64,000 bases of DNA from the IMG/VR virus record IMGVR_UViG_3300027770_001980, positions 62,001-126,000 of that record; one strand, 5' to 3'. The notes beneath the pieces are model-generated. The model had not been told where the DNA came from and ran no database searches. It saw nothing but the letters and a program-made list of their open reading frames with translations. A program made the translations under genes and the position numbers. Below are positions 630 through 61,561 of the stretch, piece by piece (the first letter of the stretch is position 1; the number at the start of each line of letters is the position of its first letter).

Positions 630-1196
630 ATGGCCGACGAAGAAGTCAAAATGAGCGCAAGCGAGAAGAAAAAAGAAGATTGGATGAATTCAAAATGGCG
701 TCCAATGATGGGCTGGATGTACATGTCCGTATGTACTTTTGATTTTGTACTTGCACCTGTTATGTGGAGTCTATTACAAAGTCTAAGCCACGGATCTGTG
801 CAAACACAATGGCAACCATTGACGTTACAAGGTGCTGGTTTATTCCACATCGCAATGGGTGCTGTTCTTGGTATTGCTGCACACGGTCGTACACAGGAAA
901 AACTAAATGGTGCTAACAACGGTGGAATGCAACTCCCTTCTAATGCAGGAACTACATATGTTCCACCGGGAGCAACACCACAAGCAGGAGGTATGAACAA
1001 TGGCGGATTCAATGTACAAACAAGCAGTCCGTCAGCATTTGGCTCTCAGGCAGCAGGAGGAGTTAGCAACTCCGGTGGATTTGGCGCATCAGCACCAACA
1101 GGCTTTAATAGCAATCCAGGCTTTGGACCGCCTGCGGTTACTACAGGATTTGGAGGAAAACCAGCACCTGTACAACCACCACAACCTTTACTATAA
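630..1196 (+). CDS. Holin-like membrane protein (3TM/GTA-holin family-like) with Gly/Pro-rich low-complexity tail
   Basis: WRPMMGWMYMSVCTFDFVLAPV hydrophobic segment with WRP motif, second hydrophobic segment FHIAMGAVLGIAA; GGAG SD upstream. Confidence 0.6.
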   Translation: MADEEVKMSASEKKKEDWMNSKWRPMMGWMYMSVCTFDFVLAPVMWSLLQSLSHGSVQTQWQPLTLQGAGLFHIAMGAVLGIAAHGRTQEKLNGANNGGMQLPSNAGTTYVPPGATPQAGGMNNGGFNVQTSSPSAFGSQAAGGVSNSGGFGASAPTGFNSNPGFGPPAVTTGFGGKPAPVQPPQPLL

Positions 1197-1604: not shown

Positions 1605-2426
1605 ATGGATCATTATACAACTTTAGGCGTTGACAGAAACGCAGGACCAGAAGACATCAAGCAGGCCTATCGAAAATTGGCCATGAAACATCACCCTGAC
1701 CGAAATGGCGGAGATGATAGCAAATTCAAACAACTACAGGAAGCATACGATACCTTGAGTGATCCGGGCAAACGTCAACAATACGACAACCCAATGCCAC
1801 AAGGTTTCCACGGTGGACCTCCTCCGGGATTTGAAGACATGTTCTCACATATGTTTGGAGGAAATCATCCATTTGGCGACATATTTGGACGTAGGCCACA
1901 ACCTGTGAGAAACAGGAATTTGAATATGCAAACAGATATTACCTTTGAAGAGTCATTCTTTGGTAAGAATCTCATTGCCACTATCCAACTACCGTCGGGT
2001 AGAGATCAAGTATTAGAAGTCAAAATACCAGCAGGTGTTGCCGACGGAACTACTTTACGTTTAGCAGGTATGGGTGACGATAGCATAGGAAATATGCCAA
2101 GAGGTGACATTCATCTAACAGTACGTGTGGCTCCGCATCCTGAATATCAAAGACAAGGTGACGATCTGGTTCGATCACTATCTATCAATTGTTTAGATGC
2201 GATACTTGGTAAAACAGTAACATTCGAAACTATCGATCGTCGTAGATTAGAGATCAACATAACACCAGGTACGCAACATGGTCAAACATTAGCAGTACAA
2301 GGTTATGGTATGCCGAATATGTCTAACAGTTATATGAAAGGACGATTGCTATTAAATATCAATATCACCATTCCGACTAATTTAAATCAGAGACAAAAAG
2401 ATCTCATTAGACAGGCCTTAGTATGA
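1605..2426 (+). CDS. dnaJ: DnaJ-class J-domain co-chaperone (CbpA-like, no zinc finger)
   Basis: J domain with HPD (KHHPDRNGG), G/F-rich linker, C-terminal DnaJ_C domain (RLAGMG, GDIHLTV, GRLLLNI); no CxxCxGxG repeats. Confidence 0.92.
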   Translation: MDHYTTLGVDRNAGPEDIKQAYRKLAMKHHPDRNGGDDSKFKQLQEAYDTLSDPGKRQQYDNPMPQGFHGGPPPGFEDMFSHMFGGNHPFGDIFGRRPQPVRNRNLNMQTDITFEESFFGKNLIATIQLPSGRDQVLEVKIPAGVADGTTLRLAGMGDDSIGNMPRGDIHLTVRVAPHPEYQRQGDDLVRSLSINCLDAILGKTVTFETIDRRRLEINITPGTQHGQTLAVQGYGMPNMSNSYMKGRLLLNINITIPTNLNQRQKDLIRQALV

Positions 2427-2923
2427 AGATAGTTAAATTTCCCGACGCTATACTACGTAAGAGTATGCCAGCATTTGATTTCAATAATCCCGTCATGGAT
2501 CCAGTCAAACTTGAAACAGACATGATTGACGCTATGCTGGCATTAGATGGTATAGGTCTTGCTGCTAATCAAGTGGGTATTGAAACCCGTGTGTTTGTTA
2601 TGGGACACAGAGATAATCCAGACGCAGCACAGGCATTCTTCAATCCGGTTGTTACTGATAATACAGAAGATATTGCCGATATGGAGGAAGGCTGCTTGAG
2701 TTTTCCTGGAATCTATGTTAAAGTTAAGAGACCTACAAAAATCAAAGCACGTTGGCAGAACAGCCAGGGTGAATTTGAGGAAGGTGAGTTTGATGGATAT
2801 AACTGTAAGTGCTTCTTACACGAATACGACCATCTTGAAGGAATCGTGTTCCAAGATAGAGTTAGCACTCTGAAATGGGCCATGGCAGTAAAGAAAACTA
2901 AACAAAAGAGAAAACACAAATAA
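2423..2923 (+). CDS. def: Peptide deformylase
   Basis: All three PDF motifs: GIGLAANQ, EGCLS, HEYDH. Confidence 0.95.
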   Translation: MKIVKFPDAILRKSMPAFDFNNPVMDPVKLETDMIDAMLALDGIGLAANQVGIETRVFVMGHRDNPDAAQAFFNPVVTDNTEDIADMEEGCLSFPGIYVKVKRPTKIKARWQNSQGEFEEGEFDGYNCKCFLHEYDHLEGIVFQDRVSTLKWAMAVKKTKQKRKHK

Positions 2924-5205
2924 TGCTACAACCAAATAAAGACCTCGAAGATATTTTTGAATCAGCCGTTGGATATGCTAACGAGCATCGTCATGAATAC
3001 CTTACATTGGAACACTTCTTATATGGTATGGTGAAGAACGAACAGTTTGCAAAACTATTGACAAACTTTGGTGCTAAAGTAGATACGATAATCTCCGATC
3101 TTGAAACATTCATTAATGAAAATTTAAAAGAAATCGTCAACGATAGCGTAGATCGTCCTAAGAAAACTGCCACTGTTGATCGTATGCTACATCGTGCATA
3201 CAATACAGCATTATTCTCCGGAAGAAAAATAATTGAACCTGTGGACTGCTTTATCAGCATTTTCGCAGAGAAGAAAAGTCATGCATGTTACTTCGTAAGA
3301 AAAGCCAATATTGATAAAGACAAATTTATTAGTTATGTGCAGAAAGAGCAAGTAGAAGATGTTGAGGAAGAAGGTGAAAAACCGGTCAATCCTCAAGTTG
3401 AACGTATGCTTAATCAATTCTGTGTCAATCTATCTGCTCGTGCTAAAGGTAAGAAGATTGATCCTGTTATTGGGCGCGAGAAAGAACTCGAAGAAGTTGA
3501 ATTAGTATTGGCCCGTAGAAATAAATCTAACGTGATGCTGATTGGTGATCCGGGTGTGGGTAAGACTGCTATTGCTGAAGGACTTGCACGTAAGATACAC
3601 GAAGGTGCTGTTCCTAAATTCATCCAAGAACATACTGTTTACAGTCTCGATATTAGTGCATTGTTAGCAGGCAGCAAGTATCGTGGAGACTTTGAAGAAC
3701 GTCTTAAAATGGTAATTGGTGCTCTCGAGAAGAAAAAGAACTGTATCTTGTTCATTGATGAGGCACATATGATGAGTGGTGCTGGTGCCAGTAGTGGTGG
3801 CAGTAATGATATGGCCAATATGCTTAAACCAGCATTGAGCAAGGGCACTATCAAAGTGGTAGCCAGCACAACATGGGAAGAATATCGCAAGCACTTTGAA
3901 AAGGATCGTGCTCTAATGCGTAGATTCCAACGTGTTACTGTTGATGAGCCAAATGAAGCAACCTGTATTAAGATCCTTAAAGGACTTAAGAAGTATTACG
4001 AGAAACATCACGGTGTTAAGATCACCAACCAAGCAATCACCGATGCTGTAACTTACTCTGTCAAGTATATGACTGATAAGAAACTGCCGGACAAGGCCAT
4101 CGATCTTATCGATTGTGCCAGTGCTCGCTTCAAGATCAAAGATGAGGAAAACGGTGTAGTGGATCACGATGAGATCATGTTTGAAGTGGCTAAGATCGCT
4201 AATCTTCCACTGGAACAGATCAATGCCAAAGAAGGTAGCAATCTTGCAGGACTCGAAAAAGGCATGCGTGGTAAAGTGTTCGGACAAGAGAAAGCGATCG
4301 AAACATTGCTGGACAAGATCTTTATTGCACAGGCAGGACTAAAAGCATTCAATAAACCCGTTGGTAGTTTCTTGTTTGTTGGCCCAACTGGTGTAGGTAA
4401 GACAGAAGTTGCTAAACAACTGGCTTCTAACATGGGAATCAAACTAATACGCTTTGATATGAGTGAATTCCAAGAGAAACACAGCGTGGCCAAGTTCATC
4501 GGTGCACCTCCTGGATATGTAGGCTTTGAAGATAACGCAGGACAACTGATCACTAACCTACAAGAAACACCAAACTGTGTGCTATTGTTAGATGAAGTTG
4601 AAAAAGCACATCCTGATGTTCTAACAGTCATGCTACAGTTGATGGACAATGGCTTTATCACCGGCAGCAATGGCAAGAAAGCAGACGGACGCAACGCTAT
4701 TATCATCATGACCAGTAACTTGGGTGCTGCTGATGCTGAAAAGAACGGTGTTGGATTTGGTAGTTTAGATCGCGATAGTGATCCTAAGGATGCTGTCAAC
4801 AAGTTCTTTGCACCTGAATTCCGCAATCGTTTAGATGGTATCATCAAGTTTGGTAAGTTGGATCAAACCAGCATGACTAAAGTGGTTAAGAAGTTTGTTG
4901 ATGATCTGAACGCATTGATCAAAGATAAGAATGTCAGTATTAAACCCAATGCAGAGGCTATTGAGTATCTGATCAAGAAAGGATTTGATAGCAAGATGGG
5001 TGCAAGACCACTACAGCGTACCATTGATGAATACATCAAGAAGCCATTGAGCAAGGAAATCTTGTTTGGCAAGTTGACTAACGGTGGAGTAGTTGAGATA
5101 TCTGTTGAGAAAGATCAACTAAAACTCAATGTGATTGAAGTATTGCCAGTTGAACGAGTTAAGGTAGTGGACAAAGATGCAGATACAGAAACTATCGTCC
5201 AGTAA
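2923..5205 (+). CDS. clpA: ATP-dependent Clp protease ATP-binding subunit (ClpA-like, two AAA+ domains)
   Basis: Clp N-domain (HEYLTLEH); Walker A GDPGVGKT and GPTGVGKT; FIDEAH and LLDEVEKAH Walker B; no ClpB middle domain. Confidence 0.93.
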   Translation: MLQPNKDLEDIFESAVGYANEHRHEYLTLEHFLYGMVKNEQFAKLLTNFGAKVDTIISDLETFINENLKEIVNDSVDRPKKTATVDRMLHRAYNTALFSGRKIIEPVDCFISIFAEKKSHACYFVRKANIDKDKFISYVQKEQVEDVEEEGEKPVNPQVERMLNQFCVNLSARAKGKKIDPVIGREKELEEVELVLARRNKSNVMLIGDPGVGKTAIAEGLARKIHEGAVPKFIQEHTVYSLDISALLAGSKYRGDFEERLKMVIGALEKKKNCILFIDEAHMMSGAGASSGGSNDMANMLKPALSKGTIKVVASTTWEEYRKHFEKDRALMRRFQRVTVDEPNEATCIKILKGLKKYYEKHHGVKITNQAITDAVTYSVKYMTDKKLPDKAIDLIDCASARFKIKDEENGVVDHDEIMFEVAKIANLPLEQINAKEGSNLAGLEKGMRGKVFGQEKAIETLLDKIFIAQAGLKAFNKPVGSFLFVGPTGVGKTEVAKQLASNMGIKLIRFDMSEFQEKHSVAKFIGAPPGYVGFEDNAGQLITNLQETPNCVLLLDEVEKAHPDVLTVMLQLMDNGFITGSNGKKADGRNAIIIMTSNLGAADAEKNGVGFGSLDRDSDPKDAVNKFFAPEFRNRLDGIIKFGKLDQTSMTKVVKKFVDDLNALIKDKNVSIKPNAEAIEYLIKKGFDSKMGARPLQRTIDEYIKKPLSKEILFGKLTNGGVVEISVEKDQLKLNVIEVLPVERVKVVDKDADTETIVQ

Positions 5206-7881: not shown

Positions 7882-8241
7882 ATGAAACTTACAGAATTCT
7901 TTAATCAGCCTATACAAATAAGCAAACGCGGTCAAGACACCGAGGATGACAAGCGTGCCGACGAACTCTTCTGGTACATCATCGACCACGATAAACTACA
8001 CAAAGATTACTTCCACTCTATCGCTCGCAAAGTAAAAAAGATGAAAGAATTCACTCCCGAGCAAGTGTCGGAAATGTATATGCCTATGGTGATCAAAGGT
8101 TGTAAAGAATACTATCACGAAAAAGAATTAAAAGGCAAGTTAGGTAAGGAATTTCCTCAAGAAATGAGAGATGACATGTGCCATAGACTGCATGATCACT
8201 ATCGCGAAGATATTGAAAAAGATATATACAAGTTAGGATAA
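7882..8241 (+). CDS. Hypothetical protein with CTS-like N-terminus (MKLTEF)
   Basis: 119-aa ORF; N-terminal motif shared with four neighbouring genes. Confidence 0.7.
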   Translation: MKLTEFFNQPIQISKRGQDTEDDKRADELFWYIIDHDKLHKDYFHSIARKVKKMKEFTPEQVSEMYMPMVIKGCKEYYHEKELKGKLGKEFPQEMRDDMCHRLHDHYREDIEKDIYKLG

Positions 8242-8245
8242 CGCT

Positions 8246-11200
8246 GTGAACTTAACCGAACTATTTAGAAATCCTAAATTAGCCATCAACGAAGGTGGCA
8301 ATGTATCTAATCAAAGTCCAGGGTGGCAAGGAGTTCCGGGAGATCATCAGGCACAGGAACTTGATCTGCATGTCCATGATCGCGCCTATGTGCAAGATGT
8401 AGTAAGCCAACTATTACATACTATTAACGATGTATATGCTCAACAGCATCAAGAACCATTATGGCATGAGAATTCCGTAAAAACTCAAAAGTTCTTGAGT
8501 GGTAGCACTTTACAATTCATGGATAAGAATATTCCAGATGAAGAATTCATTCGTGTTAAACCTAAAGTAGGCGATATTGATACACAGGCGTCTGACCAAC
8601 ATGCTGATACAATCAAACAGTTCTTACAAAGCAATACAGGCAAGGCGTTTGGCAATGCCGTATTGTTAGGATTCACCCCGGGTAATAGTCAATGGGTTAG
8701 TCTATGGGAGATCAAATTAAAAGATCTACCTGTCAAGATACAGATCGACTTTGAATATGGAGCACATGAGAAGGAAACAGGATTACCTACAGAGTGGCAA
8801 TCATATAGTCATAGTAGTGCATGGGATGATATATCTCAAAACATCAAAGGTGTATTCCACAAATATTTAGATCGTGCATTGCCATACGCACAGGCCAGTA
8901 CCAAGTATGTGGCCCGTGTATTAAAGAAAAGCACCAAGATCTCCGATGCACCTGTTACAGATAGTGATTATAGTTTCGCTGTCAGTGGACCAGGCGGCGG
9001 TGGTGTTAGTCAGAAGTATGTGCCTTACAATGATCCTGCCACTGGGCAACCTATGGAGAAAGATGGAATTCCTGTCATGCAATTACTGGAACCCAGTGCA
9101 AGACAGTATGTTCAAAATCTCTCCCAACAATTTGAAATCTTCTTTGGACGCAAACCCAAAGGTAATGACCAAGAACTTAAAAACAGTTTCATTGGAACCA
9201 TACAACTAATCGCAAAATATTTAGATGAACAGAAGAAAGAAGAAATAGCAAGACGCTTCTTCAGCATATGTTTTGAACCAGGTAGTCAAATGATTACTCG
9301 TGGTGATCCGGCAAGAGATCGTGATATAAAATTTGCGGCTATCGATTGGATGTTGGAAAATATGAAGTTGGCTAATGCTGCTGGTTTGAGAAAAGAAGCA
9401 ATCGATATGGCCACTGCTTATGCTGCCGCTTTCCAAAATAAGGCCGCTAAACCAGTTAATGAAGAAGCACAGGTAAAAGCACAATTCCGTAAAGGTATGC
9501 CACACTTGCACGATCTTAAGCCTGCTGACTTGTTAGATCTATTAGACGAAATTCATGACGGAAACGGCAGATTTAAACTACAAAACATTCCTTTAAACGT
9601 CAAAGTAGACGGATTTGGTGGCAGATTTGGTAAGAATTCCGACGGTAAGCCTTTCATGGGCACCAGTAGAACAGAACCCAGATATGAACCAGGCTTCGTA
9701 GCGTATCATCAAAAGAAAGGCACCGTTGATCCGGAAATTTTAAACCGTGCTCAATTGTTTGATGACCTATTTGAGGAAATGATGAACGCTGTCCAATTAG
9801 TTGATAGCAAGTTAGGACCTGGATTTTTGGTCAACAAACAAGTCACATGTGAAGTATTGTATCTACCATTTGCTACAGAAACTCCAGAAGGTAAACTAAA
9901 GTTTGTTGGTATACATTATGACAAATTACCATCAGGTGTCAATCTTGCATTAGTTCCATTCCGTATCACAGATGCTACCACAGGTGAAGATTTACCTAAC
10001 TCAAACAAAATCGTCCAAGAATTAACCAGCGTAGGGCAGTCAGGTAGTGTCATGTTTATTGACAACAGCCTAACACAGAATGAAGCATTAGATGTTACAG
10101 CATTAGTTCCACCATTGGAAAACATTGAACAACTCAAAGGCATGTTGGCCAGCAACAAGTTAGAAGCCCGACGTCAAGTCAAGGCAGCATTGGAGCCAGT
10201 GGCAGCGGCATTAGAGAAGGCCATCATCGAAGATCCTAACATCATCGGTAAAGATTTATTAGGACAAGACTATGAAGGTATCGTTATCAACAGCCGCCTT
10301 GGTCCTATCAAAGTAACCAGTCAAGAACAGCGTGATGTTATCACTGCTAAAAATGCTGCTAAGACTAATGCAAGAACAGAGCGTCCAAGAGGCGAGGCTA
10401 AAACCGCAGTAGTTGCCATTGGTAGTTTCGTTGGACACATCGGCCACGAACAACTTTGGGACTATACAACTAAGAAAGCAGCAGCAGTAGGAGGTGATCC
10501 ATATTTGTTTATTGGCAATGCACAGGGCAAGGATGATCCTATTCCACCATCAGTTAAAGTTCAAACATGGCACAAACTGTATCCAGAATATGCTAAAAAT
10601 ATATCCACGGTGAATCAAGATGGCGGATCACTGCTACAAAAGATCAAACACGAATTAATCAATCCACTACCAGGCAAGCCTCCACGCTATGATAATGTCA
10701 TCATCATGGTAGGTGAAGATCAAGCAGGTCTCACTATGCCTCAAGCATTGATGAAGGCTGTTAACAAGTTCCAGGGTTACGAACATGTAAAAGTTACATT
10801 AGAACCGACACCGCGTGGTACAGGCATGAGTTTCACTCGACTACGCAACATCTTAAAAGATCCCAAGGCAACTCCAGATCAACAATTTGCTGAATGGTCT
10901 AAAGGGTTTGATGTGAGCAAATTAGGTGCAGACTGGATCTTACACCTTATGGATATAACAAGGAAAGGTATGGGAATACAACAACCACAGGCACCTGTTC
11001 CGCAGGCACAACCTACACCGTTAGCAGAACGCAGAGTATTAAATGCTCTAATCGAAGGTACCAGTATTGACAGCACACTACGAGCCATCATCAATGATGT
11101 TGGTGAACCTATTACCAATGTCTATGGCACGATGAAATTCCAAGCCAAGAAGTATATGGAAAATCACGGCGAACTCGGCCGTGGCTTTAGAATGGTAGCA

Positions 11201-13219
11201 GCAGGTGTTGGTGGTCGTTGGGTTCAAAATATGTATGTAGGTAGACTACAGAATGAACTATACGATCTATGCAAATACAATACTCGTAGAACTGTAGATC
11301 TACAAGAATTCCTACGCGGAGTCGAAACTGACGGTGAGTTAGAAATGAAGAGATCATTTGGCAACATCGCTAATAATCTACCTCCAATATTGGCCAAGTT
11401 AGGCGAACAAATCAACGCACCACAACTAACAAGAAATGCTCAGCGTTGGATGCAGAACAAAGCAGAATACGAACGATATCTAATGGATCTGGAAGCAGCA
11501 GGCGATGAGCCGGATGATATTCCTGTTAGAAGCAAGCCTCCAAAGAGTAATGCTGTCGGGCAACAGAATGCACAGGTTGATTCAATCATCAACAATGTGT
11601 TAGGTAAAGTTCCTAAAAGTATAGCAGGTGATATCCGTAATGCTATCGCTCGTGCTCCAAACAAATTGGCAGCATTGAAAGCGGAGTTAGATCGTCACAA
11701 TATCAATATGGCAGAAGACAATGATGTTATGTCACGCATGGCTCGAGATCTAACTGGTCCAGGTGCTCCTGATGCGAAACGCAGAGCCCAACGCGATCAA
11801 CAGCGTCAGCAGGATCGTGCTCAAAGTGATGGCAGAGATCATGGCCCTAAATGGGATGTAGAGGAAGGCGAACAAGATCCACAGTCAGAATTAAAACTGA
11901 TTAACCAAAAACTCAAAGATGCGTATAAACAAGTTCGTAACAATTCTTCTGTGTCAATAGGTTGGTACATGTCAGAGGTAAAAGCATTAAAAGCACGCCG
12001 CGAAGAATTGATTAAACAATTAAGACAAGGTGTGGCGGAGGCCGGTAGTCCTGCTCAACAGGCAGCAATAGCCATTTCTATGAAGAAAGCAGGAAAGAAA
12101 CCAAAAAGTGAAGATATCTCATTAAACGAACTATCAGGATACGGCGGTGATAAAAAATATGAGCACTTAGGCACTCATAAAAGATATGAGGTTTATGTCA
12201 CTAAACAAAAATTTAATAATTTATACTTTATTGCAATTGCCGAGAATACAAGAACGTTAGAGTCAAAATTTAAAGCAAAAGGTAACACTCCACAAGAAGC
12301 AGTGAATAATTTAAAATTAGAAATTGATAAAGAAATCGATGTTGCTACCAAAGTCAGTGGACAGGCTATATTAGATTTTAATGTTGATTTTGTAAAAGAT
12401 ATATTAGAAATGAGTTCCGATACATTCTACGCTAAAATAGTAGCGGGGCCAAGATTAGTTATAGCAGGACCTGAAATGATGGAATATCCTGAAATAATGC
12501 GTGATGAAGGATTTAAGCCAAGTGCTATTAGAACATATAAGGGTGGCGAGGGGACTACAAAACTTCCAGGAGTTCCGCTAAGTTCTAAATCAGCAGCGTC
12601 CGCAAATCTTATTGCCAATGGTAGATATGTGTTAGGAAATGAAGAACTCGATAAAGACGGCAATAGAGTATTTGAGTTAAACTTTGATAGTGTGGTACAG
12701 GCGTCAAACGATAAAATGAGACTAAGGGCACCTGCTCTTACTGTAGGAACCAATAGATCTCAAGGTGTGTCAGAGGCTCCTAAAAGTGCTGCGGTTAGAT
12801 TAGGCAATGCTATCAAGCGTGTGCAAGGTACAACAGCAGCAAGCCAAGCAAGATCTGTTATCCCTTCAAGTATCCCTAAACCAGAACCCAAGAAGGATGA
12901 GAAAACTAATGAGAGAATGATGCCAGCCAGTATGTTCGCAGGCAGCAAAAAGAACAAACTCGGACCAGCAGGACAATGGAAGAACACCGGACCTAAAAAG
13001 AACAAACCAGCACAGGCCGGTGATTTAGTTGGCGGTATGGAGGAAAGTTTAAAAGATTCCAACCCTTGCTGGAAAGGCTATCACCCTGTGGGTACCAAGA
13101 AAAAGTCAGGTAAAACTGTTCCAAACTGTGTACCAGTGAGCGAGAATGTTGAAAACATTATGGATGCTCTGATTAACAAGATCGTAGTAAATGAAGCAAT
13201 TCAGAATAACCGTAAATGA
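8246..13219 (+). CDS. 1657-aa modular polyprotein: Pol-beta-like NTase, ligase-like KxDG domain, HIGH-motif nucleotidyltransferase and several small modules
   Basis: GTG start MNLTEL; SGS...GDID (8498-8581); NVKVDG (9602-9613) and later YEGIVI; HIGH (10436-10447) with GED and R..GMSFTRLR; C-terminal CWKGY...GKTVPNCVP module. Confidence 0.65.
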   Translation: MNLTELFRNPKLAINEGGNVSNQSPGWQGVPGDHQAQELDLHVHDRAYVQDVVSQLLHTINDVYAQQHQEPLWHENSVKTQKFLSGSTLQFMDKNIPDEEFIRVKPKVGDIDTQASDQHADTIKQFLQSNTGKAFGNAVLLGFTPGNSQWVSLWEIKLKDLPVKIQIDFEYGAHEKETGLPTEWQSYSHSSAWDDISQNIKGVFHKYLDRALPYAQASTKYVARVLKKSTKISDAPVTDSDYSFAVSGPGGGGVSQKYVPYNDPATGQPMEKDGIPVMQLLEPSARQYVQNLSQQFEIFFGRKPKGNDQELKNSFIGTIQLIAKYLDEQKKEEIARRFFSICFEPGSQMITRGDPARDRDIKFAAIDWMLENMKLANAAGLRKEAIDMATAYAAAFQNKAAKPVNEEAQVKAQFRKGMPHLHDLKPADLLDLLDEIHDGNGRFKLQNIPLNVKVDGFGGRFGKNSDGKPFMGTSRTEPRYEPGFVAYHQKKGTVDPEILNRAQLFDDLFEEMMNAVQLVDSKLGPGFLVNKQVTCEVLYLPFATETPEGKLKFVGIHYDKLPSGVNLALVPFRITDATTGEDLPNSNKIVQELTSVGQSGSVMFIDNSLTQNEALDVTALVPPLENIEQLKGMLASNKLEARRQVKAALEPVAAALEKAIIEDPNIIGKDLLGQDYEGIVINSRLGPIKVTSQEQRDVITAKNAAKTNARTERPRGEAKTAVVAIGSFVGHIGHEQLWDYTTKKAAAVGGDPYLFIGNAQGKDDPIPPSVKVQTWHKLYPEYAKNISTVNQDGGSLLQKIKHELINPLPGKPPRYDNVIIMVGEDQAGLTMPQALMKAVNKFQGYEHVKVTLEPTPRGTGMSFTRLRNILKDPKATPDQQFAEWSKGFDVSKLGADWILHLMDITRKGMGIQQPQAPVPQAQPTPLAERRVLNALIEGTSIDSTLRAIINDVGEPITNVYGTMKFQAKKYMENHGELGRGFRMVAAGVGGRWVQNMYVGRLQNELYDLCKYNTRRTVDLQEFLRGVETDGELEMKRSFGNIANNLPPILAKLGEQINAPQLTRNAQRWMQNKAEYERYLMDLEAAGDEPDDIPVRSKPPKSNAVGQQNAQVDSIINNVLGKVPKSIAGDIRNAIARAPNKLAALKAELDRHNINMAEDNDVMSRMARDLTGPGAPDAKRRAQRDQQRQQDRAQSDGRDHGPKWDVEEGEQDPQSELKLINQKLKDAYKQVRNNSSVSIGWYMSEVKALKARREELIKQLRQGVAEAGSPAQQAAIAISMKKAGKKPKSEDISLNELSGYGGDKKYEHLGTHKRYEVYVTKQKFNNLYFIAIAENTRTLESKFKAKGNTPQEAVNNLKLEIDKEIDVATKVSGQAILDFNVDFVKDILEMSSDTFYAKIVAGPRLVIAGPEMMEYPEIMRDEGFKPSAIRTYKGGEGTTKLPGVPLSSKSAASANLIANGRYVLGNEELDKDGNRVFELNFDSVVQASNDKMRLRAPALTVGTNRSQGVSEAPKSAAVRLGNAIKRVQGTTAASQARSVIPSSIPKPEPKKDEKTNERMMPASMFAGSKKNKLGPAGQWKNTGPKKNKPAQAGDLVGGMEESLKDSNPCWKGYHPVGTKKKSGKTVPNCVPVSENVENIMDALINKIVVNEAIQNNRK
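12026..12040 (+). repeat. Recurrent module-junction motif CAAGGTGTGGCGGAG (QGVAE)
   Basis: First 14 nt identical to 14839-14852; related copies at 12761-12775 (CAAGGTGTGTCAGAG) and 15148-15162 (AGAGGTGTGGAGGAA). Confidence 0.7.
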
Positions 13220-13457: not shown

Positions 13458-13898
13458 ATGGAACAATTAACACAAATCGCCAAGGTTGCTTTTGCCAGTG
13501 AATTCAGTTTCGCACTAAAAGCACAGAATTTCCACTGGAATGTAGAAGGTAGTGACTTCTTGGAATATCATCAATTGTTTGAAATGATATACAGCGAAGT
13601 ATACGGCAGCATTGATGACTTTGCTGAAAATCTACGCAAGTTAGGAACTTATGCTCCTGCCAGTTTATCACGATTCAACATGTTAACACAGGTTGGCGAT
13701 GAAACTGAAATACTACCATTAGAGGCCATGGTGAAAGAATTATTGATGGATAATGAGAAGATGATACTTATCCTGAAGAAAACATATGCTGCCAGTGAAG
13801 CAGCAGGTGAGCCTGGATTTAGTAACTTCTTGGCAGATCGCATTGATGGTCATCGCAAGCATGGTTGGATGTTGCGTGCCAGTAGCCGAGGTCAATAA
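13458..13898 (+). CDS. dps: Dps / ferritin-like DNA-protection protein
   Basis: FHWNVEGSDFLEYHQLFE, DDFAENLRKLG and HRKHGWML match Dps ferroxidase-centre motifs. Confidence 0.9.
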   Translation: MEQLTQIAKVAFASEFSFALKAQNFHWNVEGSDFLEYHQLFEMIYSEVYGSIDDFAENLRKLGTYAPASLSRFNMLTQVGDETEILPLEAMVKELLMDNEKMILILKKTYAASEAAGEPGFSNFLADRIDGHRKHGWMLRASSRGQ

Positions 13899-14263
13899 TG
13901 CGGGCACTTGAATTTATTACCGAAAAGAAAAATGGTAAACTTTCCAAGAGACAACAGCAACCCACAAGAGGTGCTAATGTCTACAGCGACGGTGAACAAG
14001 TAAGTGGTGATTATACCTCTTACAGGTTAGGTATGGCAGTAGCAGGGGCAGACGGCAAGACTCCGGTGAAAATAGATTCAAAAAGTTGGGTTGGCAAAAA
14101 GAAAACTACACATCCTTATTCAGAGGTAGAACAAGATATGTTAAAAGATGCCTACAAAGCAGTAGGTGCAAAATATACCGACCTTAACCACGGCGATATG
14201 ACCAGCAAAGAGTTAGAAGGAACAAACACAGTAAGTCCTGTAGCAAATTGGAATAAACAATGA
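13898..14263 (+). CDS. Hypothetical protein with CTS-like N-terminus (MRALEFITE)
   Basis: TAATG-coupled to dps; N-terminus resembles T4 internal-protein CTS MKTYQEFIAE. Confidence 0.7.
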   Translation: MRALEFITEKKNGKLSKRQQQPTRGANVYSDGEQVSGDYTSYRLGMAVAGADGKTPVKIDSKSWVGKKKTTHPYSEVEQDMLKDAYKAVGAKYTDLNHGDMTSKELEGTNTVSPVANWNKQ

Positions 14264-16066: not shown

Positions 16067-16849
16067 ATGAGACTAGATGAGTTTGATCAAGAAGACTACG
16101 AGATACGCAATCTAAAGAAGTTAGATGGTATCTTGGTCACACTCTGCAAATTGGTCATTGAAGGCCAAAAGAGAGATAAAGAACGCTATGGTATGGTCGC
16201 TGCCGCTGTATTAGATCCTGACAATAATTTGGTCATGGGATTAAATTATATGCAAGGCGATTTACATGTCCACGCTGAAAAAGCGGCCATGGAAGCCTAC
16301 GATAGAAAATACGGAGATATTCCAGAAGGCAGTATTCTTCTTACTACATTGAGTCCTTGCAGTGAATTCAGTGACGAAACTGCACAAGAAAGACACGGGG
16401 ATAGTTGTACCGATCTAATTAATAATTCCATCATACGAAAAGTCTATTGCGGGTTTATGGATCCAAGCCAAGGTGATGACGAGCACGAAGAAAGAGAATT
16501 CACTCTACAAGAAACTAACAATACCAATATTAGAACATTATGTGAAAAGTTTGCTGATACATTCTTGGAAGATGAGTTGAATGAATCTGCTGCTTGGCAT
16601 CGTAAGGCAGGTAAGAATAAAACAGGTGGGCTCAATCGTAAAGGCGTTATGAGTTATCGTAGAGAGCACCCTGGCAGTAAACTACAAACCGCAGTAACCA
16701 CTAAACCCAGTAAATTGAAACCGGGTAGCAAGGCTGCTAAACGCCGTAAATCATTCTGTGCTAGAATGGGCGGCGTTGATGGTCCTATGAAAAAAGATAA
16801 CGGTGAGCCCACACGGAAAGCATTGGCACTAAGAAAGTGGAACTGCTAA
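16067..16849 (+). CDS. Zn-dependent cytidine/RibD-type deaminase domain fused to a basic C-terminal phage module
   Basis: MRLDEF N-terminus; HVHAE and TTLSPC...C deaminase motifs; after LNE a basic module (AAWHRKAGKN...RRKSFCARM...WNC) like DUF6321 of T4-like phages. Confidence 0.7.
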   Translation: MRLDEFDQEDYEIRNLKKLDGILVTLCKLVIEGQKRDKERYGMVAAAVLDPDNNLVMGLNYMQGDLHVHAEKAAMEAYDRKYGDIPEGSILLTTLSPCSEFSDETAQERHGDSCTDLINNSIIRKVYCGFMDPSQGDDEHEEREFTLQETNNTNIRTLCEKFADTFLEDELNESAAWHRKAGKNKTGGLNRKGVMSYRREHPGSKLQTAVTTKPSKLKPGSKAAKRRKSFCARMGGVDGPMKKDNGEPTRKALALRKWNC

Positions 16850-17457
16850 TGCGTATCAATGAACTACTTGAAAGTGCAGGTGATTTACCAAGCGATCCCG
16901 GTCCTAGAGAATTTATTAGTAATAAATTTCATGTTAAATTTACCAACGATGCTCTTTTAGTTTACGATGGCGGTGAACTTGTTTATAAAAGGCCAGGAAA
17001 TTTCTCAAACCCAACTAGGCAAAATGCGTCAAATGCAAAAGGTGTCACTAATACCCTGTGGAGGGCTAAACACGATCCAGCATATAAAAATCTAGCCAGT
17101 TCTCCTTACTTGGTTATAAAACCAAGTGACGTTCATAAAGCAGCCGACAAAAAAGGTATACCGTGGGATAAAGATAGGAAATTTTTTAATTTATCAAAAA
17201 AACTAACAGGTAAAGGTCATTTAGATAACATGACCCCAGAAGAACTTAGAATAATGTTTGATTACTTAACTAAGATAAAAGTTAGAGAAAACTTTGCTGA
17301 CGGTCGGCATCCTGAGGATAAGGGCGACTCAAAGCGTTATCATGTTCCTACCAAAGGTAGTGTCAGTAGTTTGAGAAAGTTTGCTAAAAATCATTCAGGT
17401 CGGGCAGCACAATTGGCACACTGGGCTGCCAATATGAAAGCAGGTAAAAAGAAATAA
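16849..17457 (+). CDS. Hypothetical modular protein with CTS-like N-terminus (MRINEL)
   Basis: Start refined to the ATG overlapping the previous TAA (TAATG at 16847-16851); C-terminal module begins VRE-NFADG. Confidence 0.65.
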   Translation: MRINELLESAGDLPSDPGPREFISNKFHVKFTNDALLVYDGGELVYKRPGNFSNPTRQNASNAKGVTNTLWRAKHDPAYKNLASSPYLVIKPSDVHKAADKKGIPWDKDRKFFNLSKKLTGKGHLDNMTPEELRIMFDYLTKIKVRENFADGRHPEDKGDSKRYHVPTKGSVSSLRKFAKNHSGRAAQLAHWAANMKAGKKK

Positions 17458-25763: not shown

Positions 25764-26938
25764 TGCGTAAACTATATTACATGGGGCTTGAACCCTACAA
25801 AGCAAGGTACACTCTGCAATTGCAAGAGTGGAATACTAGTGTGTTTGATAAAAGAGGCATCGATTATGTTGTTGTGCCCGGGGAAACACTTAGTAATGAC
25901 CAAGCAATTGTAACAGGTCAAGTATTAGATGCACATGGTCGTACATACTACGGTATGAGCCAACTGATGAACTTGATCCGCATGATGAAAGCAGGAGAAC
26001 TAAACCATGAAGATGTTATCTATTTTGAGGACATGTTTCAGCCCGGCATCGAGAGCCTGCCTTATATTATGGATCAAATTGATCCTGGCCTTCGTCCCCG
26101 TATTTTTGTGCGGTGTCTTGCTCAGTCCATTGATCCTGATGATTTCGTTCATGTGTGGGGAATGGCGGGATGGATGGGACACTACGAGAAAATGGTGGAT
26201 AGCTTTGTTAGCGGTGTTTTGGCCACCAATGAGGAAATGGTAGCACACATGAAGATTGCAGGTTGGAAGGCTCCGATCTACAATATCTCAGGCTTGGCAT
26301 TTGGCAAAGCAGAAGTTCAGAGTCGTGTGGCCAGTATCCGACCATTCCATTCACGCAAACATCGTGTGGTGTTCTCGGCACGATGGGATCAGGAGAAACA
26401 ACCTGACTTCTACATGGACTTGATTGAAGCATGGAATGACCAACCAGGATTGGAACCGGTTGAGTTCTGTGTGTGCAGTGGTGGTAAACTAAAATCAAAT
26501 AGTGATAGCTATATGCAACGCACTCGTGACTTGGTTGCACGAGGATTGCTAACAATCTACGAGGATTTAGAAAAGAATGAATACTACAACATTGTTAATG
26601 ATAGTCGGGTTGTATTTAACTGTGCGTTACAAGATTGGGTTTCAAACACAGTCAGTGAGGCTGATGCACTCGGATGCAATGTGCTATACCCTGCTTATCG
26701 TAGCTTCCCTGAAACTTTTGCCAATGACCATACTCGTCTGTATGTGCCTTGGAGCATCGGCGATGCTATGGATAAGTTGGAATCGTTATTGGACACACCA
26801 CATCCAAACATGGGCGCAATCAGCGACTACAACGACGGAACAATCGACCGAATCATTGACATCTTGCAAGGCGACGGAGAAGACCTGTTGCGTATGAGCA
26901 CTGACTACAGAAAATACACCCGTGAATCAAAATACTAA
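25763..26938 (+). CDS. GT-B fold glycosyltransferase (GT4/phage glucosyltransferase-like)
   Basis: VVFSARWDQEKQPD, FNCALQDWVSNTVSEADALGCNVLYPAYRSFPE (GT4-like E-x7-E-type region). Confidence 0.75.
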   Translation: MRKLYYMGLEPYKARYTLQLQEWNTSVFDKRGIDYVVVPGETLSNDQAIVTGQVLDAHGRTYYGMSQLMNLIRMMKAGELNHEDVIYFEDMFQPGIESLPYIMDQIDPGLRPRIFVRCLAQSIDPDDFVHVWGMAGWMGHYEKMVDSFVSGVLATNEEMVAHMKIAGWKAPIYNISGLAFGKAEVQSRVASIRPFHSRKHRVVFSARWDQEKQPDFYMDLIEAWNDQPGLEPVEFCVCSGGKLKSNSDSYMQRTRDLVARGLLTIYEDLEKNEYYNIVNDSRVVFNCALQDWVSNTVSEADALGCNVLYPAYRSFPETFANDHTRLYVPWSIGDAMDKLESLLDTPHPNMGAISDYNDGTIDRIIDILQGDGEDLLRMSTDYRKYTRESKY

Positions 26939-27932
26939 ACGAGTAATCATAACAGGTGCGATGGGCTTTATCGGTAGTCATACCGCTAAGGCCTTTCAGC
27001 GAGCTGGCTATTATGTAATTGGCATTGACCGTGCATTGACTATTCCAGACGCCGCAAGATTTCTCAATGAAATGATCATAGATGATTTTGTTGACATTGC
27101 TGCAAAAGTTGCCAAAATAAACAACATCAACACTATCATACATATTGCAGGAACCAGTTTAGTTGGTCCCAGCATTGATAATCCTGGTGAATACTACAAT
27201 AATAATGTTGCCAAGACTAATCTTATGTTAGATGAACTGTCTCAACAGGGGTGGAAAGGCACTATTATATTCAGCAGCAGTGCAGCGACATATGGTAATG
27301 AATGTAGTGTTCCTATCGTTGAAGAGGCACAGGGTATTCCAGTCAGTCCATATGGGCACAGTAAGAAAATGTGTGAATATGTTATTGAAAGTCATTCACA
27401 TGCATACGGACACAAAGGCATCGCATTGAGATATTTCAATGCATGTGGATGTGACCCAGATAATGAACTTGGTAACAATTGGGATGATACACATTTAATT
27501 CCCAGAGTAGTTCAAAGTGCATTAGAGAGAACTACATTGACTATCAATGGTAATGATTTTCCAACCAATGATGGAACCTGTATAAGAGATTATCTACATG
27601 TATCAGACATAGCAGATGCTCATGTTAAGGCTGTAGAACTTGCTAATAAACTCGACAGTGGCATATTTAAAGCATATAATTTAGGAACAGGTGTAGGCAT
27701 AAGCAATCTTGAAATAGTACAGGCTGTATCTAATGCAGGACTTAAAGTTGATTATAAATTTGGTCCAAAGAGATTCGGTGATCCAGCTGAGTTGATTGCC
27801 AATCCAACACAGTTTATGTCTAATACAGGATGGGATCCTAAATATAGTAAATTAGAAACTATTGTATCCACTACTGTTAAATGGATGGAAAATTTAGATA
27901 TTCAAATTATAAAAGCAGAATTTATTGCTTAG
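26922..27932 (+). CDS. galE: UDP-glucose 4-epimerase / NDP-sugar epimerase
   Basis: TGAMGFIGSH Rossmann motif, FSSSAATYG, SPYGHSK (YxxxK), LRYFNACG, RDYLHVSDIADAH. Confidence 0.92.
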   Translation: MNQNTKRVIITGAMGFIGSHTAKAFQRAGYYVIGIDRALTIPDAARFLNEMIIDDFVDIAAKVAKINNINTIIHIAGTSLVGPSIDNPGEYYNNNVAKTNLMLDELSQQGWKGTIIFSSSAATYGNECSVPIVEEAQGIPVSPYGHSKKMCEYVIESHSHAYGHKGIALRYFNACGCDPDNELGNNWDDTHLIPRVVQSALERTTLTINGNDFPTNDGTCIRDYLHVSDIADAHVKAVELANKLDSGIFKAYNLGTGVGISNLEIVQAVSNAGLKVDYKFGPKRFGDPAELIANPTQFMSNTGWDPKYSKLETIVSTTVKWMENLDIQIIKAEFIA

Positions 27933-28842: not shown

Positions 28843-28870
28843 TTGACTTTTCTAAATACAAGTGTATAAT
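28843..28870 (+). promoter_or_regulatory. sigma70-type promoter for queE
   Basis: TTGACT (28843-28848), 16 bp, TATAAT (28865-28870). Confidence 0.65.
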
Positions 28871-28888
28871 TACTTATCGAGGATTAAT

Positions 28889-29734
28889 ATGTCAAAGATT
28901 AAGATAGCAGAACTTTTCTACTCTATACAGGGCGAGGGTAGATATATGGGGGTGCCCAGTGTGTTCCTTAGAACTTTTGGATGTAATTTCCGCTGTGCAG
29001 GCTTCGGTATGCCGCGGGGAGAACTAAGTGAAGAAGCCAATAATATCAATCCGATAGAATTTAAAACATATAACGAACTCCCGCTTGTTAGCACAGGATG
29101 TGATAGTTATGCCAGTTGGGATCCACGTTTTAAAGATCTCAGTCCACTACTTACTACAGATGCTATTGCCGACGCCATTGTGGATACACTACCGTACAAA
29201 GAATGGCGTGACGAACATCTTGTAATCACAGGTGGCGAGCCTTTGTTGGGTTGGCAACGTGCTTATCCAGATTTGCTCGATCATCCCAAGATGGCAGGAC
29301 TTAAAGAAATTACATTTGAAACAAATGGCACTCAGAAACTTGACCCCAGATTCTATGAGTTTCTAAAAGCATGGCGTAACGATTCTCCTATTGAAAGAGA
29401 AATCACATTCTCGGTAAGTGCTAAACTTCCTTGCTCAGGTGAGAAGTGGGATGAAGCAATCTTACCCAAGGTTGTTTGTGAATACGAAGAAGTTGGCACA
29501 GCATATCTAAAGTTTGTTATTGCTAACGAACAAGACTTTGCAGATGCAGAATGTGCTATTGCCGCGTATCGTCGTCCAGGATTTAAAGGACATGTTTATC
29601 TAATGCCAGTAGGCGGTGTGGAAAGTGTCTATACGATGAACAATCGTAATGTAGCATTGTTGGCAATGAAACACGGACTACGCTACAGTGATCGACTCCA
29701 AGTGCCACTGTTTAAGAACGAGTGGGGAACTTAA
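28889..29734 (+). CDS. queE: 7-carboxy-7-deazaguanine synthase (radical SAM)
   Basis: ELFYSIQGEGRYMGVPSVFLRTFGCNFRC...GCDS, VITGGEP, FETNG, SDRLQ; start refined to ATG 28889 after GAGG. Confidence 0.93.
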   Translation: MSKIKIAELFYSIQGEGRYMGVPSVFLRTFGCNFRCAGFGMPRGELSEEANNINPIEFKTYNELPLVSTGCDSYASWDPRFKDLSPLLTTDAIADAIVDTLPYKEWRDEHLVITGGEPLLGWQRAYPDLLDHPKMAGLKEITFETNGTQKLDPRFYEFLKAWRNDSPIEREITFSVSAKLPCSGEKWDEAILPKVVCEYEEVGTAYLKFVIANEQDFADAECAIAAYRRPGFKGHVYLMPVGGVESVYTMNNRNVALLAMKHGLRYSDRLQVPLFKNEWGT

Positions 29735-61100: not shown

Positions 61101-61561
61101 TGCTGATACCAATCTGTATTTGTTGGATCATTCCATCCTATTACAGTATTTGAAAGATTAGTACCATTGGAATCAAAAACGCTATCGGAAGTTGCAACTG
61201 CTGTGAGCTTTAGAAACCCATTGGCAGGAACATTTCTTTTTGGATTGTAACTGATTAATTGTGCAAGTCTTAATATACTATCCCGACGTTGTGCAGTTTC
61301 TAAAAAGTTTTCACGTGCATTTAAATCTATACGGAAACTTAGATTTTGACCCAAGTATGCGATAACATCAATTAAGGCAATGAATTCACTGCTATCAATA
61401 TAATCGTTAAATTCTTCAGGGTATTTTTCCCTAATGTAGGTAATCATTGTACGACGAAGAGTTTCAAAGTCGTAGCTCTTGAAGTCGGCATTCTTAAAAG
61501 ATTGATATACTTTTTTCCAATCTTCGCCAACCAGTAATTTTGTGTTTGTTGATGGTATCAT
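58178..61561 (-). CDS. Baseplate wedge protein, T4 gp6-like
   Basis: SYDFETLRRTMITYIR...NDYIDSSEFIALIDVIAYLGQNLSFRIDLNARENFLETAQRRDSILRLAQLISYNPKR; YTQNRMVTGEDY. Confidence 0.88.
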   Translation of the reverse strand: MIPSTNTKLLVGEDWKKVYQSFKNADFKSYDFETLRRTMITYIREKYPEEFNDYIDSSEFIALIDVIAYLGQNLSFRIDLNARENFLETAQRRDSILRLAQLISYNPKRNVPANGFLKLTAVATSDSVFDSNGTNLSNTVIGWNDPTNTDWYQQFINIMNSAMITNFGNPESRDSIDSIITEQYRIHSSNADVPIFNFSKNINGTPMSFEIVPSTFAGNTVIYEEAPSPGNFFSLMYKNDNQGSGSANTGFFAHFKQGTLSVSRFSVDTPVPNEIIGVNTPNINDTDVWLWQLDKNGNFSTLWTQVASLVGNNVIYNSINQNIRSLYSVSTRDQDQIDLNFADGVFGDLPKGDFRFFYRQSNGLNYVIKPEQMSGIQVNIPYLNSSGQNHVLKLTLSLEYTVNNSAGPESNLSIQTKAPQTYYTQNRMVTGEDYNIAPLNAGADILKIKSIARVTSGLSKYFDLSDISGQYSKTNIFADDGILYKEENISKFEFEFSSRNQVLAVIKNQLDPIISLTALRSFYLENYPRISLSSFGLSWNQTNVISEESRGYFSQLGIPLPIGTYSQSVLMYLVNGSIIKFLPPSGKYFDQKNKLKTLPNSGVIPTGGRPYIWATIKQIIGDGSNYGVGNLSDGTGPVIFSIVVPQGAIPSEVIYKYNSILSYSIENEITNICMNRRNFGLTIDKVTRDWQFILNSNLNLLDPFSLTNQFNAIDQGKDSSWLVAFVWTGKNYEVRYRTLYYFFESEEQTAFFNDESTINFDFTTNSVIKDKITVLSVNSTSTNSVVGLGHDYLWQIDGPVIEYDGYVEPKKIKVSFYDATNTGQISDPDAFNAIAESQFVYFEKSSDKASYSLTYTEIIPLQTEADFLVYKDSNTVNNGDLFYFYDPLLNIVKYWSSLTSSLVYTDQYFGRSGRSNIKFQYQHNSGHERRLDPGKSNIIDIYVLTNSYDNDYRSWLSGNGSKEPLLPTSQGLGQNYLPNLNNIKSISDEIVFHPVAYKLLFGSGADVNLQAKFKAVKNPEKITTDNDLKTQILQSINEFFALENWEFGQSFHFSELSTYIMNNLTPYILNLIIVPVANNGFGSLYEVACLSNELFISGAKISDIEIIDSITASQLKSSSSIITTTGN

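Follow-up and report, generated by a model that had tools for sequence, protein, structure and literature searches.

The DNA analysed here is a 64,000-nucleotide stretch (the window) comprising bases 62001-126000 of a 221 kb viral contig, IMG/VR record IMGVR_UViG_3300027770_001980, with a CheckV completeness of 62%. It carries a 1657-residue open reading frame (ORF) with a GTG start located 4 nt past the stop of the upstream ORF, and the product combines an N-terminal leader, three nucleotidyltransferase domains (D1, D2 and D3) and a modular C-terminal part (Table 1). The main new result is the pattern formed by this leader and by protease-type [LIV]-x-E sites at the domain borders of the protein and its relatives. 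Because the genome contains a Peptidase_S77 (T4 gp21-type) prohead protease gene outside the window (89 bits, above the cut-off), the source is a large T4-like phage known from metagenomes only; a megablast against phage records returned no matches.

An initial annotation, made from the sequence without database searches, had described three unrelated nucleotidyl-transfer folds fused in tandem at 8290-10980. When the window protein was compared directly with Pfam, NCBIfam and PDB sequences, nothing significant emerged, and the motif reading was therefore not settled by routine annotation. All of the quoted motifs are located in the single reading frame of one ORF, and their residues are invariant across 32-53 homologues; the coordinates, however, cut the ORF short, since D3 ends at about nt 11029 and 729 more residues follow.

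Table 1. Coordinates of the 1657-residue ORF, its domains and motifs, and other features of the genome; nucleotide positions refer to the window unless contig G000 is named.
Feature	Residues	Nucleotides	Strand	Remark
Whole ORF	1-1657	8246..13219	+	Leader, D1, D2, D3, variable C-terminal part
N-terminal leader	1-16	8246..8293	+	Ends I-N-E; predicted capsid-targeting propeptide and first protease site
D1	17-406	8294..9463	+	Pol-beta-fold nucleotidyltransferase with beta-rich insert and helical C-terminal subdomain; ends V-N-E (E406)
SGS motif	85-87	8498-8506	+	D1
GDID motif	109-112	8570-8581	+	D1
QIDF motif	166-169	8741-8752	+	D1
PVNE	403-406	9452-9463	+	D1/D2 border
D2	407-705	9464..10360	+	Ligase-type adenylyltransferase domain without OB domain
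NVKVDG motif	451-456	9596-9613	+	D2
YEGIVI motif	676-681	10271-10288	+	D2
D3	706-928	10361..11029	+	HIGH-motif nucleotidyltransferase, predicted Rossmann-type, with S-F-T-x-L-R motif; ends L-A-E (E928)
GHIGHEQ motif	730-736	10433-10453	+	D3
(V)GED motif	822-825		+	D3
RGTGMSFTRLR motif	857-867	10814-10846	+	D3
C-terminal part	929-1657	11030..13219	+	Modular
Peptide deformylase and 760-residue ClpB-like ATPase		1605-5205	+	Upstream of the gene
119-residue upstream ORF		7882..8241	+	Leader MKLTEFF; probably accessory partner
Dps/ferritin-like "DNA binding protein"		13458-13898	+	Directly 3' of the main ORF
121-residue ORF		13898..14263	+	Leader MRALEFITE, of the same kind as in the main ORF
260-residue deaminase-domain protein		16067-16849	+	Starts MRLDEF, leader-like
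202-residue ORF		16849..17457	+	Leader-like start MRINELLE; leader pattern
Nucleotide-sugar epimerase-like gene		26922-27932	+	
QueE-like radical-SAM gene		28862-29734	+	
4969-residue ORF		43267-58176	-	
1127-residue ORF		58178-61561	-	
Two further leader-bearing ORFs		contig G000 8883-9626, 25768-26019		Elsewhere in the genome
Peptidase_S77 prohead protease gene		contig G000 147577-148005		Outside the window

The nucleotidyltransferase domains

Residue conservation was judged on per-domain alignments of homologues that are 26-77% identical (53 sequences for D1, 36 for D2 and 32 for D3). In D1, G86, S87, D110, D112, Q166 and D168 are invariant, and G86-S87, D110-x-D112 and D168 provide the Pol-beta hG[GS] motif, [DE]-h-[DE] pair and third carboxylate, respectively, with a GS-to-DxD spacing of 22 residues compared with the classic 9-13. 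The model of residues 1-405 has a predicted local distance difference test score (pLDDT) of 93.8. When 48,161 PDB chains were searched with it in an unbiased, Foldseek-independent manner, 47 of the 50 best matches were Pol-beta-superfamily nucleotidyltransferases (Z 5.2-8.1), the top list comprising TUT7 (Z 8.1), TUT1, Trf4, OAS2, TdT, GLD-2 and Pol lambda/beta. What the best neighbours (TUT7, TUT1, Trf4, TdT and Pol mu/lambda) have in common is action on polynucleotide 3'-OH ends. Foldseek matches to the PDB were weak and enriched in SpoT, Pol lambda/beta, JHP933, MenT/TglT and cGAS, and an AFDB cluster named "Polymerase nucleotidyl transferase domain" matched at E 5.8e-7. Since the structural list is consistent and the GS/DxD/D triad invariant, the modelled placement of D1 in the Pol-beta superfamily is safe despite middling Z-scores; within that superfamily D1 is a family without a Pfam entry. 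Two closer identities were rejected: RlaP, because a match to the PF10127 hidden Markov model is absent, and, as best reading, a cGAS/DncV-like CD-NTase, which had been considered for its motif spacing (Z 5.4-6.5, root-mean-square deviation 7-9 Å).

D2 contains the motifs of lysine-adenylylating ligases. Residues K453, D455, G456, E536, F553, Y558, E677, G678 and K689 are invariant; they include motif I (K453-V-D455-G456, in which K453 is the predicted nucleotidylated lysine), motif III (E536), motif IIIa (F553/Y558) and motif IV (E677-G678). The model of residues 401-710 (pLDDT 94.0) retrieved only RNA and DNA ligases among its top 50 Foldseek matches (probability 0.57-1.0, and 1.0 for the top 17), and a VIA search gave 106 chains with Z of at least 8, led by Naegleria RNA ligase Rnl5 (Z 11.2), REL1 (9.9) and T4 Rnl2 (9.7), followed by Pnkp ligase, T4 Rnl1 and Rnl3 (each 9.2) and by DNA ligases at 8.6-9.1. 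RNA ligases thus rank above DNA ligases in both searches. D2 aligns over 175-199 residues with Naegleria gruberi Rnl5, T. brucei REL1, T4 Rnl2 and T4 Rnl1 and shares motifs I, III, IIIa and IV with them, but differs in having just 8-15% identity, a single motif V lysine and long helical inserts, and, unlike Rnl1-5, no N- or C-terminal specificity modules. An OB domain is absent from the model, where D3 comes directly after D2. No match to the PF01068 DNA ligase family was found for D2, and Pfam RNA_ligase did not match the window protein and was matched by one of the 36 D2 members at 0.08. Like D1, the D2 profile found no solved relatives by sequence. D2 is, as judged from its model, a lysine-adenylylating ligase domain closest to RNA ligases, and it is likewise a family without a Pfam entry. 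In AFDB, ligase-like domains occur fused to cytidyltransferase-like or citrate-lyase-ligase domains.

These neighbours also bear on the proposal that the protein is an injected DNA end-repair kit, in which D1 would act as a PolX-like gap filler or terminal transferase and D2 as a DNA ligase to mend nicks, gaps and restriction breaks in the incoming genome. ASFV PolX plus ligase and bacterial LigD are DNA-repair analogues. The alignment of D1 with Pol mu, Pol lambda, TdT, Pol beta and ASFV PolX covers palm and thumb (~180 residues) and scores Z 6.7-8.3, and the matches of D2 include the DNA ligases listed above. No canonical RNA or DNA ligase, including PF01068, was found in the 221 kb available, although at 62% completeness the absence of another ligase means little. 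On the other side, RNA ligases outrank DNA ligases for D2, the unbiased search placed RNA terminal transferases at the top for D1, which lacks both an 8-kDa/lyase and a fingers domain, and D2 has neither an OB nor a DNA-binding domain. We consider a DNA substrate for the pair improbable.

D3 was characterised by profile comparison. Invariant positions are G726, G730, H731, G733, H734, D764, P765, K771, G823, D825 and R867; the (H/T)xGH motif is present as G-S-F-V-G-H731-I-G-H734 with every G and H invariant, and the second, ISxTxxR-type motif as S-F-T864-x-L-R867, in which the arginine is invariant and the threonine nearly so. The D3 profile matches a T4-like cyanophage "cytidylyltransferase" over its full length (E 8e-20), and D3 matches PHROG 3041 "cytidyltransferase" (9e-11); the profile also aligns to the HxGH region of RibF (E 3e-4). 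FAD_syn is weakly matched by 31 of the 32 members (best 2.3e-5), with no Pfam match of D3 itself above the gathering score (FAD_syn 13.4 bits, cut-off 27). Atlas neighbours of D3 carry PF01467, which serves as a lead only. These profile matches place D3 among the HIGH-motif nucleotidyltransferases, in the T4-like cyanophage "cytidylyltransferase" family. The three unrelated folds that the initial annotation had read from motifs are therefore borne out by structure models for D1 and D2, whose per-domain searches returned the expected folds, and by sequence and profiles for D3, with catalytic residues conserved among the homologues of each; the three domain identities are held with very high confidence.

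The nearest sequence matches of D3 are small-molecule adenylyltransferases (RibF FMNAT, FAD_syn and ATP-sulfurylase), as is the PPAT match of an analogous Vibrio phage domain described below, and Pol-beta nucleotidyltransferases include CD-NTases and OAS, both among the weaker matches of D1. This agrees with a nucleotide-metabolite or signalling kit whose substrates are not nucleic acids, D3 being an NMN-, FMN- or phosphopantetheine-type adenylyltransferase (restoring NAD+ after NADase defences, for example) and D1 making or capping a nucleotide signal. However, no partner enzyme of a known NAD+ salvage or reconstitution route was seen beside the gene, D3 is constantly paired with a ligase-type domain that has no role in NAD+ routes, the catalytic lysine and ligase motifs of D2 are invariant, and the CD-NTase matches of D1 are poor (Z 5.4-6.5, deviation about 9 Å). 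Small-molecule substrates for the whole are accordingly judged quite unlikely.

The C-terminal part (residues 929-1657) is modular and poorly conserved. Residues 929-1165 form a module common to ~23 relatives; a globular segment at ~1300-1470 is rare, and a terminal module at 1556-1645, with the signature CWKGY...PNC, is widely shared. Relatives carry other domains in its place: lysozyme, LysM, PG_binding_1, sigma70_r4, DUF6321, amidoligase or a second nucleotidyltransferase. Such swapping, together with several disparate catalytic domains on one polypeptide predicted to enter the host with the DNA, is also a property of polyvalent proteins (Iyer et al. 2017, PMC5512222). Unlike them, neither the window protein nor six relatives scanned contained the hub domains (zincin MPTase, ArdC-N, MuF) detectable by Pfam or PHROG. 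The Pol-beta nucleotidyltransferases of that work are minimal, firmicute and ArdC-linked, and that paper describes neither the three-domain set nor the protease-site borders (PMC5512222).

Fused and split forms in other phages

Relatives were gathered by a word-indexed search (596 matches) and an exhaustive search over 50% clusters (848 matches). The best 120 of the 596 share 59-100% identity across the first 925 residues, beyond which their C-terminal parts differ widely in length. Among 268 relatives collected, 155 have D1, D2 and D3 in this order; D1 alone is present in 53, D1-D2 and D2-D3 in 8 each, D2 alone in 5 and D3 alone in 8, some of the shorter architectures being fragments. The three parts are thus a conserved module and not an accident of one assembly.

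In other genomes the same parts are separate genes. Contig L016 keeps the DnaJ/Pdf/ClpB synteny of the window, and the gene is split exactly at the D1/D2 border into 394- and 514-residue genes; in contig L017 three genes in succession encode a short D1-like protein, D2 and a cytidyltransferase. Xanthomonas phage BUDD contains, in a row, a D1 homologue (E 7e-21), a 333-residue gene, a D2 homologue (profile E 5e-27) and a PF01467 cytidyltransferase. The 333-residue gene was rejected as a relative, having neither similarity nor a Pfam match, and the 162-residue BUDD cytidyltransferase does not form one family with D3 (not significant; same superfamily, different branch).

Vibrio phage Va1 encodes a D1 homologue (profile E 1e-85) and, 1.3 kb downstream, the 484-residue Va1_166 (contig L007, 7472-8926), annotated as hypothetical. 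The N-terminal half of Va1_166 has HKTDG, EEGVIL and LLKW at the positions of ligase motifs I, IV and V, and the C-terminal half matches CTP_transf_like above the Pfam cut-off and matches PPAT. Because the D2 and D3 profiles do not detect it, Va1_166 looks like an independent ligase/HIGH fusion. Its gene is located ~5 kb from a tRNA nucleotidyltransferase gene.

In cyanophages S-H9-1 and S-SZBM1 (S-SZBM1_140/141) the D3-family enzyme comes directly after DUF6267, a family with invariant KWDG, QGD, EGYVA and KLVDR (K-L-V-D-R) at spacings that match those of ligase motifs I, III, IV and V. DUF6267 may be an unrecognised covalent nucleotidyltransferase, judging from these motifs; its profile found no PDB ligase. 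The S-SZBM1 copy of the enzyme matches the D3 profile at E 2.8e-13, and its locus resembles the window gene in that the D3-family enzyme follows a KxDG-bearing protein in the same order. It differs in that the genes are separate and DUF6267 is marginally alignable to D2 at motif I alone; D2 was rejected as a DUF6267 member, as the one hhalign alignment is local to motif I (E 2.5e-4, probability 43%), and the two are treated as analogous. DUF6267 has 6057 matches, with thousands of marine metagenome proteins, and the S-H9-1 copy is at contig L008, 2775-4007. D1 was not found in S-H9-1, the sole one of these cyanophage genomes searched, and a 547-residue S-H9-1 protein proved to have no relation to D1. 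These comparisons provide a lead on the long-unexplained cyanophage "cytidylyltransferase". Pairing of D3 with ligase-like domains thus recurs in unrelated phages, and this constant pairing, together with the missing protease site at the D2/D3 border (see below), suggests that D2 and D3 catalyse a coupled reaction.

A leader and protease-type sites at the domain borders

The T4 prohead protease gp21 cuts after L/I-x-E, and in T4 a change of the glutamate to Asp prevents processing while leaving targeting intact. The T4 capsid-targeting sequence (CTS) is MKTYQEFIAE (PMC8442874), of which residues 4 and 7 serve targeting and residues 8 and 10 processing (PMC9026906). As in T4 Alt and IPI-III, the window protein has an N-terminal leader (MNLTELF...INE) followed by such a site, and its LTELF matches ITELF of the Alt N-terminus (MELITELFDE), so that TELF is shared. 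The relatives' leaders, such as MKKFKQFLKE, MLTFKTFLGE and MNSFKQYLQE, fit the T4 CTS position by position, following the pattern of T4 internal proteins, M-x-T/S-F/Y-K/Q-x-F/Y-L/I-x-E (PMC8442874; PMC9026906). In D1 relatives the residues ahead of an invariant G17-G18-N19 end in [LIV]-x-E, or else the protein starts M-GGN. Among 204 D1-bearing relatives, 154 have a short leader of 5-27 residues and 22 a long extension, both ending in [LIV]-x-E before GGN (176 proteins), 23 start M-GGN and 5 are of other kinds; in the leaderless forms the protein start coincides with the predicted cut. A leader is also present on gp014 of the cultured Campylobacter phage CP21.

Only five positions keep [LIV]-x-E in half or more of the 155 three-domain proteins. 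E16 (96%), E406 (84%) and E928 (64%) mark the leader/D1, D1/D2 and D3/C-terminal borders, and E435 (86%) and E824 (76%) are located inside folded segments. The PVNE that the initial annotation had named as a linker is the E406 site. Each border was then evaluated in 57 representatives of 50%-identity clusters by comparing the linker with composition-matched shuffles of itself. Sites occurred at the leader/D1 border in 53 of 57 (expected 19.7), at the D1/D2 border in 54 (expected 21.9) and at the D3/C-terminal border in 54 (expected 30.4), whereas the D2/D3 border had none (expected 10.7). The D1/D2 linker is between 14 and 193 residues long and cannot otherwise be aligned, from which we conclude that the site kept there is under selection. 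In 44 of its 54 occurrences it is directly followed by alanine (E|A), and the glutamyl-alanyl cut at gp22 is the bond first described for gp21 (PMC9026906). The predicted products are D1 (17-406), D2-D3 without a cut (407-928) and the C-terminal part, and they correspond to the gene splits that occur naturally in relatives; in L017 the D1-like gene, D2 and the cytidyltransferase each start with their own T4-CTS-like leader of 10-12 residues. Enrichment at three borders with none in the D2/D3 linker offers a usable rule for predicting head cargo in T4-like genomes.

The leader pattern, M-[KR]-x-x-E-[FL]-[FIL] and then [LIV]-x-E, also occurs on otherwise unrelated ORFs of this genome (Table 1), with leader-like starts at 5 of 262 gene starts compared with 1 of 1291 internal Met positions. 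These ORFs may be further capsid-targeted cargo. At the same positions in L016 are a 123-residue ORF with a similar leader, matching the ORF at 7882, and a 126-residue ORF with MRAKEFITE, matching that at 13898; in relatives P0125 and P0146 a segment homologous to the 119-residue ORF is fused in frame N-terminal to D1 and ends in [LM]-x-E before GGN. The neighbouring 260-residue protein combines a dCMP/cytidine deaminase domain (PF00383, 4e-9) with a C-terminal DUF6321 (5.7e-21).

Virion proteomics of a cultured relative is available. Liquid chromatography-mass spectrometry of CsCl-purified cyanophage S-SZBM1 virions identified "one enzyme (cytidylyltransferase)", gp140, and its neighbour gp139 (PMC9146016). 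S-SZBM1_140, the D3-family enzyme described above, starts MRFRQFIIE, a leader of the same kind, and S-SZBM1_139 matches the terminal CWKGY...P-N/D-C module of the window protein (38% over 58 residues, E 2e-6). Virions of a cultured relative therefore contain counterparts of two segments that are joined in the window protein. Injection had been a guess in the initial annotation; it now has indirect support from the leader, the border sites, the S77 gene, the leader-bearing separate genes and the virion D3 relative. On these grounds we lean towards packaging and processing of the window protein.

T4 Alt, a packaged and injected ADP-ribosyltransferase by annotation, is a close precedent in that the genome studied here has an S77 protease and the cargo is likewise an enzyme. 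Unlike Alt and the internal proteins, the cargo here would be three nucleotidyltransferases, not an ADP-ribosyltransferase or nuclease inhibitor, in the form of a polyprotein with internal sites at domain borders; outside the leader there is no sequence similarity, and packaging is predicted.

Several observations weigh against packaging and fit an ordinary cytoplasmic multi-enzyme made after infection, unpackaged and uncleaved, whose leader would be a conserved N-terminal helix and whose [LIV]-x-E would be a feature typical of flexible linkers. The motif is short and present in 25 copies in the window protein. The leader has 16 residues and is Alt-like instead of a canonical 10-residue CTS, and many D1 relatives are leaderless, including those of L016, Va1 and BUDD and the 23 counted above. 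The gene is located among replication and metabolic genes of early/middle type (peptide deformylase, ClpB-like, Dps-like, DNA polymerase) and not among head genes, although the same is true of T4 alt. Finally, the virion detection covers relatives of the D3 family and of the C-terminal module, not D1, D2 or this phage. An unpackaged enzyme would not, however, account for a site more frequent at three borders, and rarer at the fourth, than in the shuffles, for leaderless forms that begin exactly at the predicted cut, or for the leader shared with unrelated neighbouring ORFs at gene starts, and an S77 protease in the genome and a D3-family relative in virions (PMC9146016) also argue against it. 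We regard it as unlikely, though the foremost of the alternatives. Cleavage could also mark a head-core or scaffold component that is degraded in maturation and has no role after injection, as T4 core proteins are likewise cut at L/I-x-E into many fragments (PMC9026906). The catalytic residues of three enzyme folds are, however, invariant across wide divergence, and the conserved sites are at borders, the two inside domains (E435 and E824) lying in folded or conserved core segments; a scaffold is thus highly improbable.

A possible role in RNA-end repair, and the surrounding genes

Our tentative explanation of the whole is that the protein is packed, cut and injected as a ready-made RNA-end repair kit. 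The leader would direct the polyprotein into the assembling T4-type prohead, where the gp21-type (S77) protease would cut after E16, E406 and E928 to release D1, the uncut D2-D3 unit and the C-terminal part, all of which would leave the head with the DNA at infection. In the host, D1 would extend damaged RNA 3' ends by one or a few nucleotides and D2 would then seal the break, the two repairing tRNA or other RNA that host ribotoxins had cut, ahead of phage protein synthesis; D3, attached to D2, probably produces or regenerates some nucleotide-linked compound on which D2 depends. RNA repair is favoured because D1 is nearest to enzymes that extend 3'-OH ends, D2 is nearest to RNA ligases and RlaP with an RNA ligase provides a precedent. 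To our knowledge, that pair is the only characterised pairing of a 3'-end nucleotidyltransferase with an RNA ligase. RlaP Pol-beta nucleotidyltransferases extend RNA 3' ends by 1-2 nucleotides in partnership with RNA ligases, and addition plus ligation returns tRNA to function once "smart" ribotoxins, RloC among them, have damaged it (PMC12776372).

The window protein resembles RlaP (PF10127) in the genetic coupling of a Pol-beta nucleotidyltransferase to an RNA-ligase-type enzyme. It differs in that D1 is ~390 residues with an extra beta-rich insert and without a PF10127 match, and in that the parts are fused, phage-borne and joined by a HIGH-motif nucleotidyltransferase. With T4 Pnkp and Rnl1 the proposed system would share a phage answer to anticodon nucleases through an RNA ligase; unlike it, the T4 enzymes are made after infection, include an end-healing kinase-phosphatase and lack a nucleotidyltransferase or HIGH-motif enzyme.

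Injected phage proteins act before phage gene expression, and few enzymatic ones are known (T4 Alt, N4 vRNAP and P1 Dar). Ribotoxin defences stop translation, such that newly made phage enzymes cannot answer. Ready-made delivery makes sense because these defences block the translation needed to make the enzymes, and a pre-packed repair kit, if it exists, would get round that block.

Other observations count against RNA repair by these domains. The D1 Z-scores (7-8) are within the range that the structure-search tool calls common, and none of the 53 D1 members matches RlaP (PF10127) or another Pfam nucleotidyltransferase family at E of 1 or below. Motif V of D2 has one conserved lysine (K689) instead of the usual two (K-x-K), the +2 position being an invariant threonine. 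An end-healing kinase or phosphatase is missing from the window protein; the genome has one small AAA_33 kinase ORF elsewhere. RNA repair also offers no evident part for D3. RNA repair as the role is consequently held as a tentative assignment, if anything slightly weaker than the explanation as a whole. Among the functions proposed in the initial annotation for a counter-defence kit, RNA repair fits the structural neighbours best, whereas NAD+ restoration and signal interference have no specific support; that the parts form such a kit is something we infer.

A more far-reaching version would hold that D1 is a new RNA 3'-end nucleotidyltransferase family and D2-D3 a new two-enzyme ligase unit in which D3 supplies or recycles the nucleotide donor, the whole being delivered by the head, independent of translation and carried by large T4-like phages of a widespread lineage. 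We consider it doubtful as a whole; if it is true, the ligase/HIGH pairing in cyanophages and in Vibrio and Xanthomonas phages would represent an unrecognised general phage system. The D1, D2 and DUF6267 families occur across hundreds of phages known from metagenomes, as well as in cultured isolates of Campylobacter, Vibrio and Xanthomonas phages and of cyanophages, and no description of the three-domain set, of the D1 family or of DUF6267 as ligase-like was found in the literature.

The gene is surrounded by genes for peptide deformylase, a ClpB-like ATPase, a Dps-like protein, a family-B DNA polymerase and a QueE-like enzyme. The order peptide deformylase, ClpB-like ATPase and the gene also occurs in L016 (194-3807), the one relative contig examined for it, with a DnaJ gene ahead. 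A promoter and terminator scan remained at background level, and no tRNA genes were found in the window. The Dps/ferritin-like protein matches phrog_3636 (8e-26). The nucleotide-sugar epimerase-like and QueE-like radical-SAM genes hint at DNA or nucleotide modification. The minus-strand ORFs of 4969 and 1127 residues are in a block of lower GC content (~0.33, compared with 0.40 in the plus-strand block); comparably huge proteins of the T4-like cyanophage S-SZBM1 (6619 and 2073 residues) are labelled "baseplate wedge initiator" or "structural protein" (PMC9146016).

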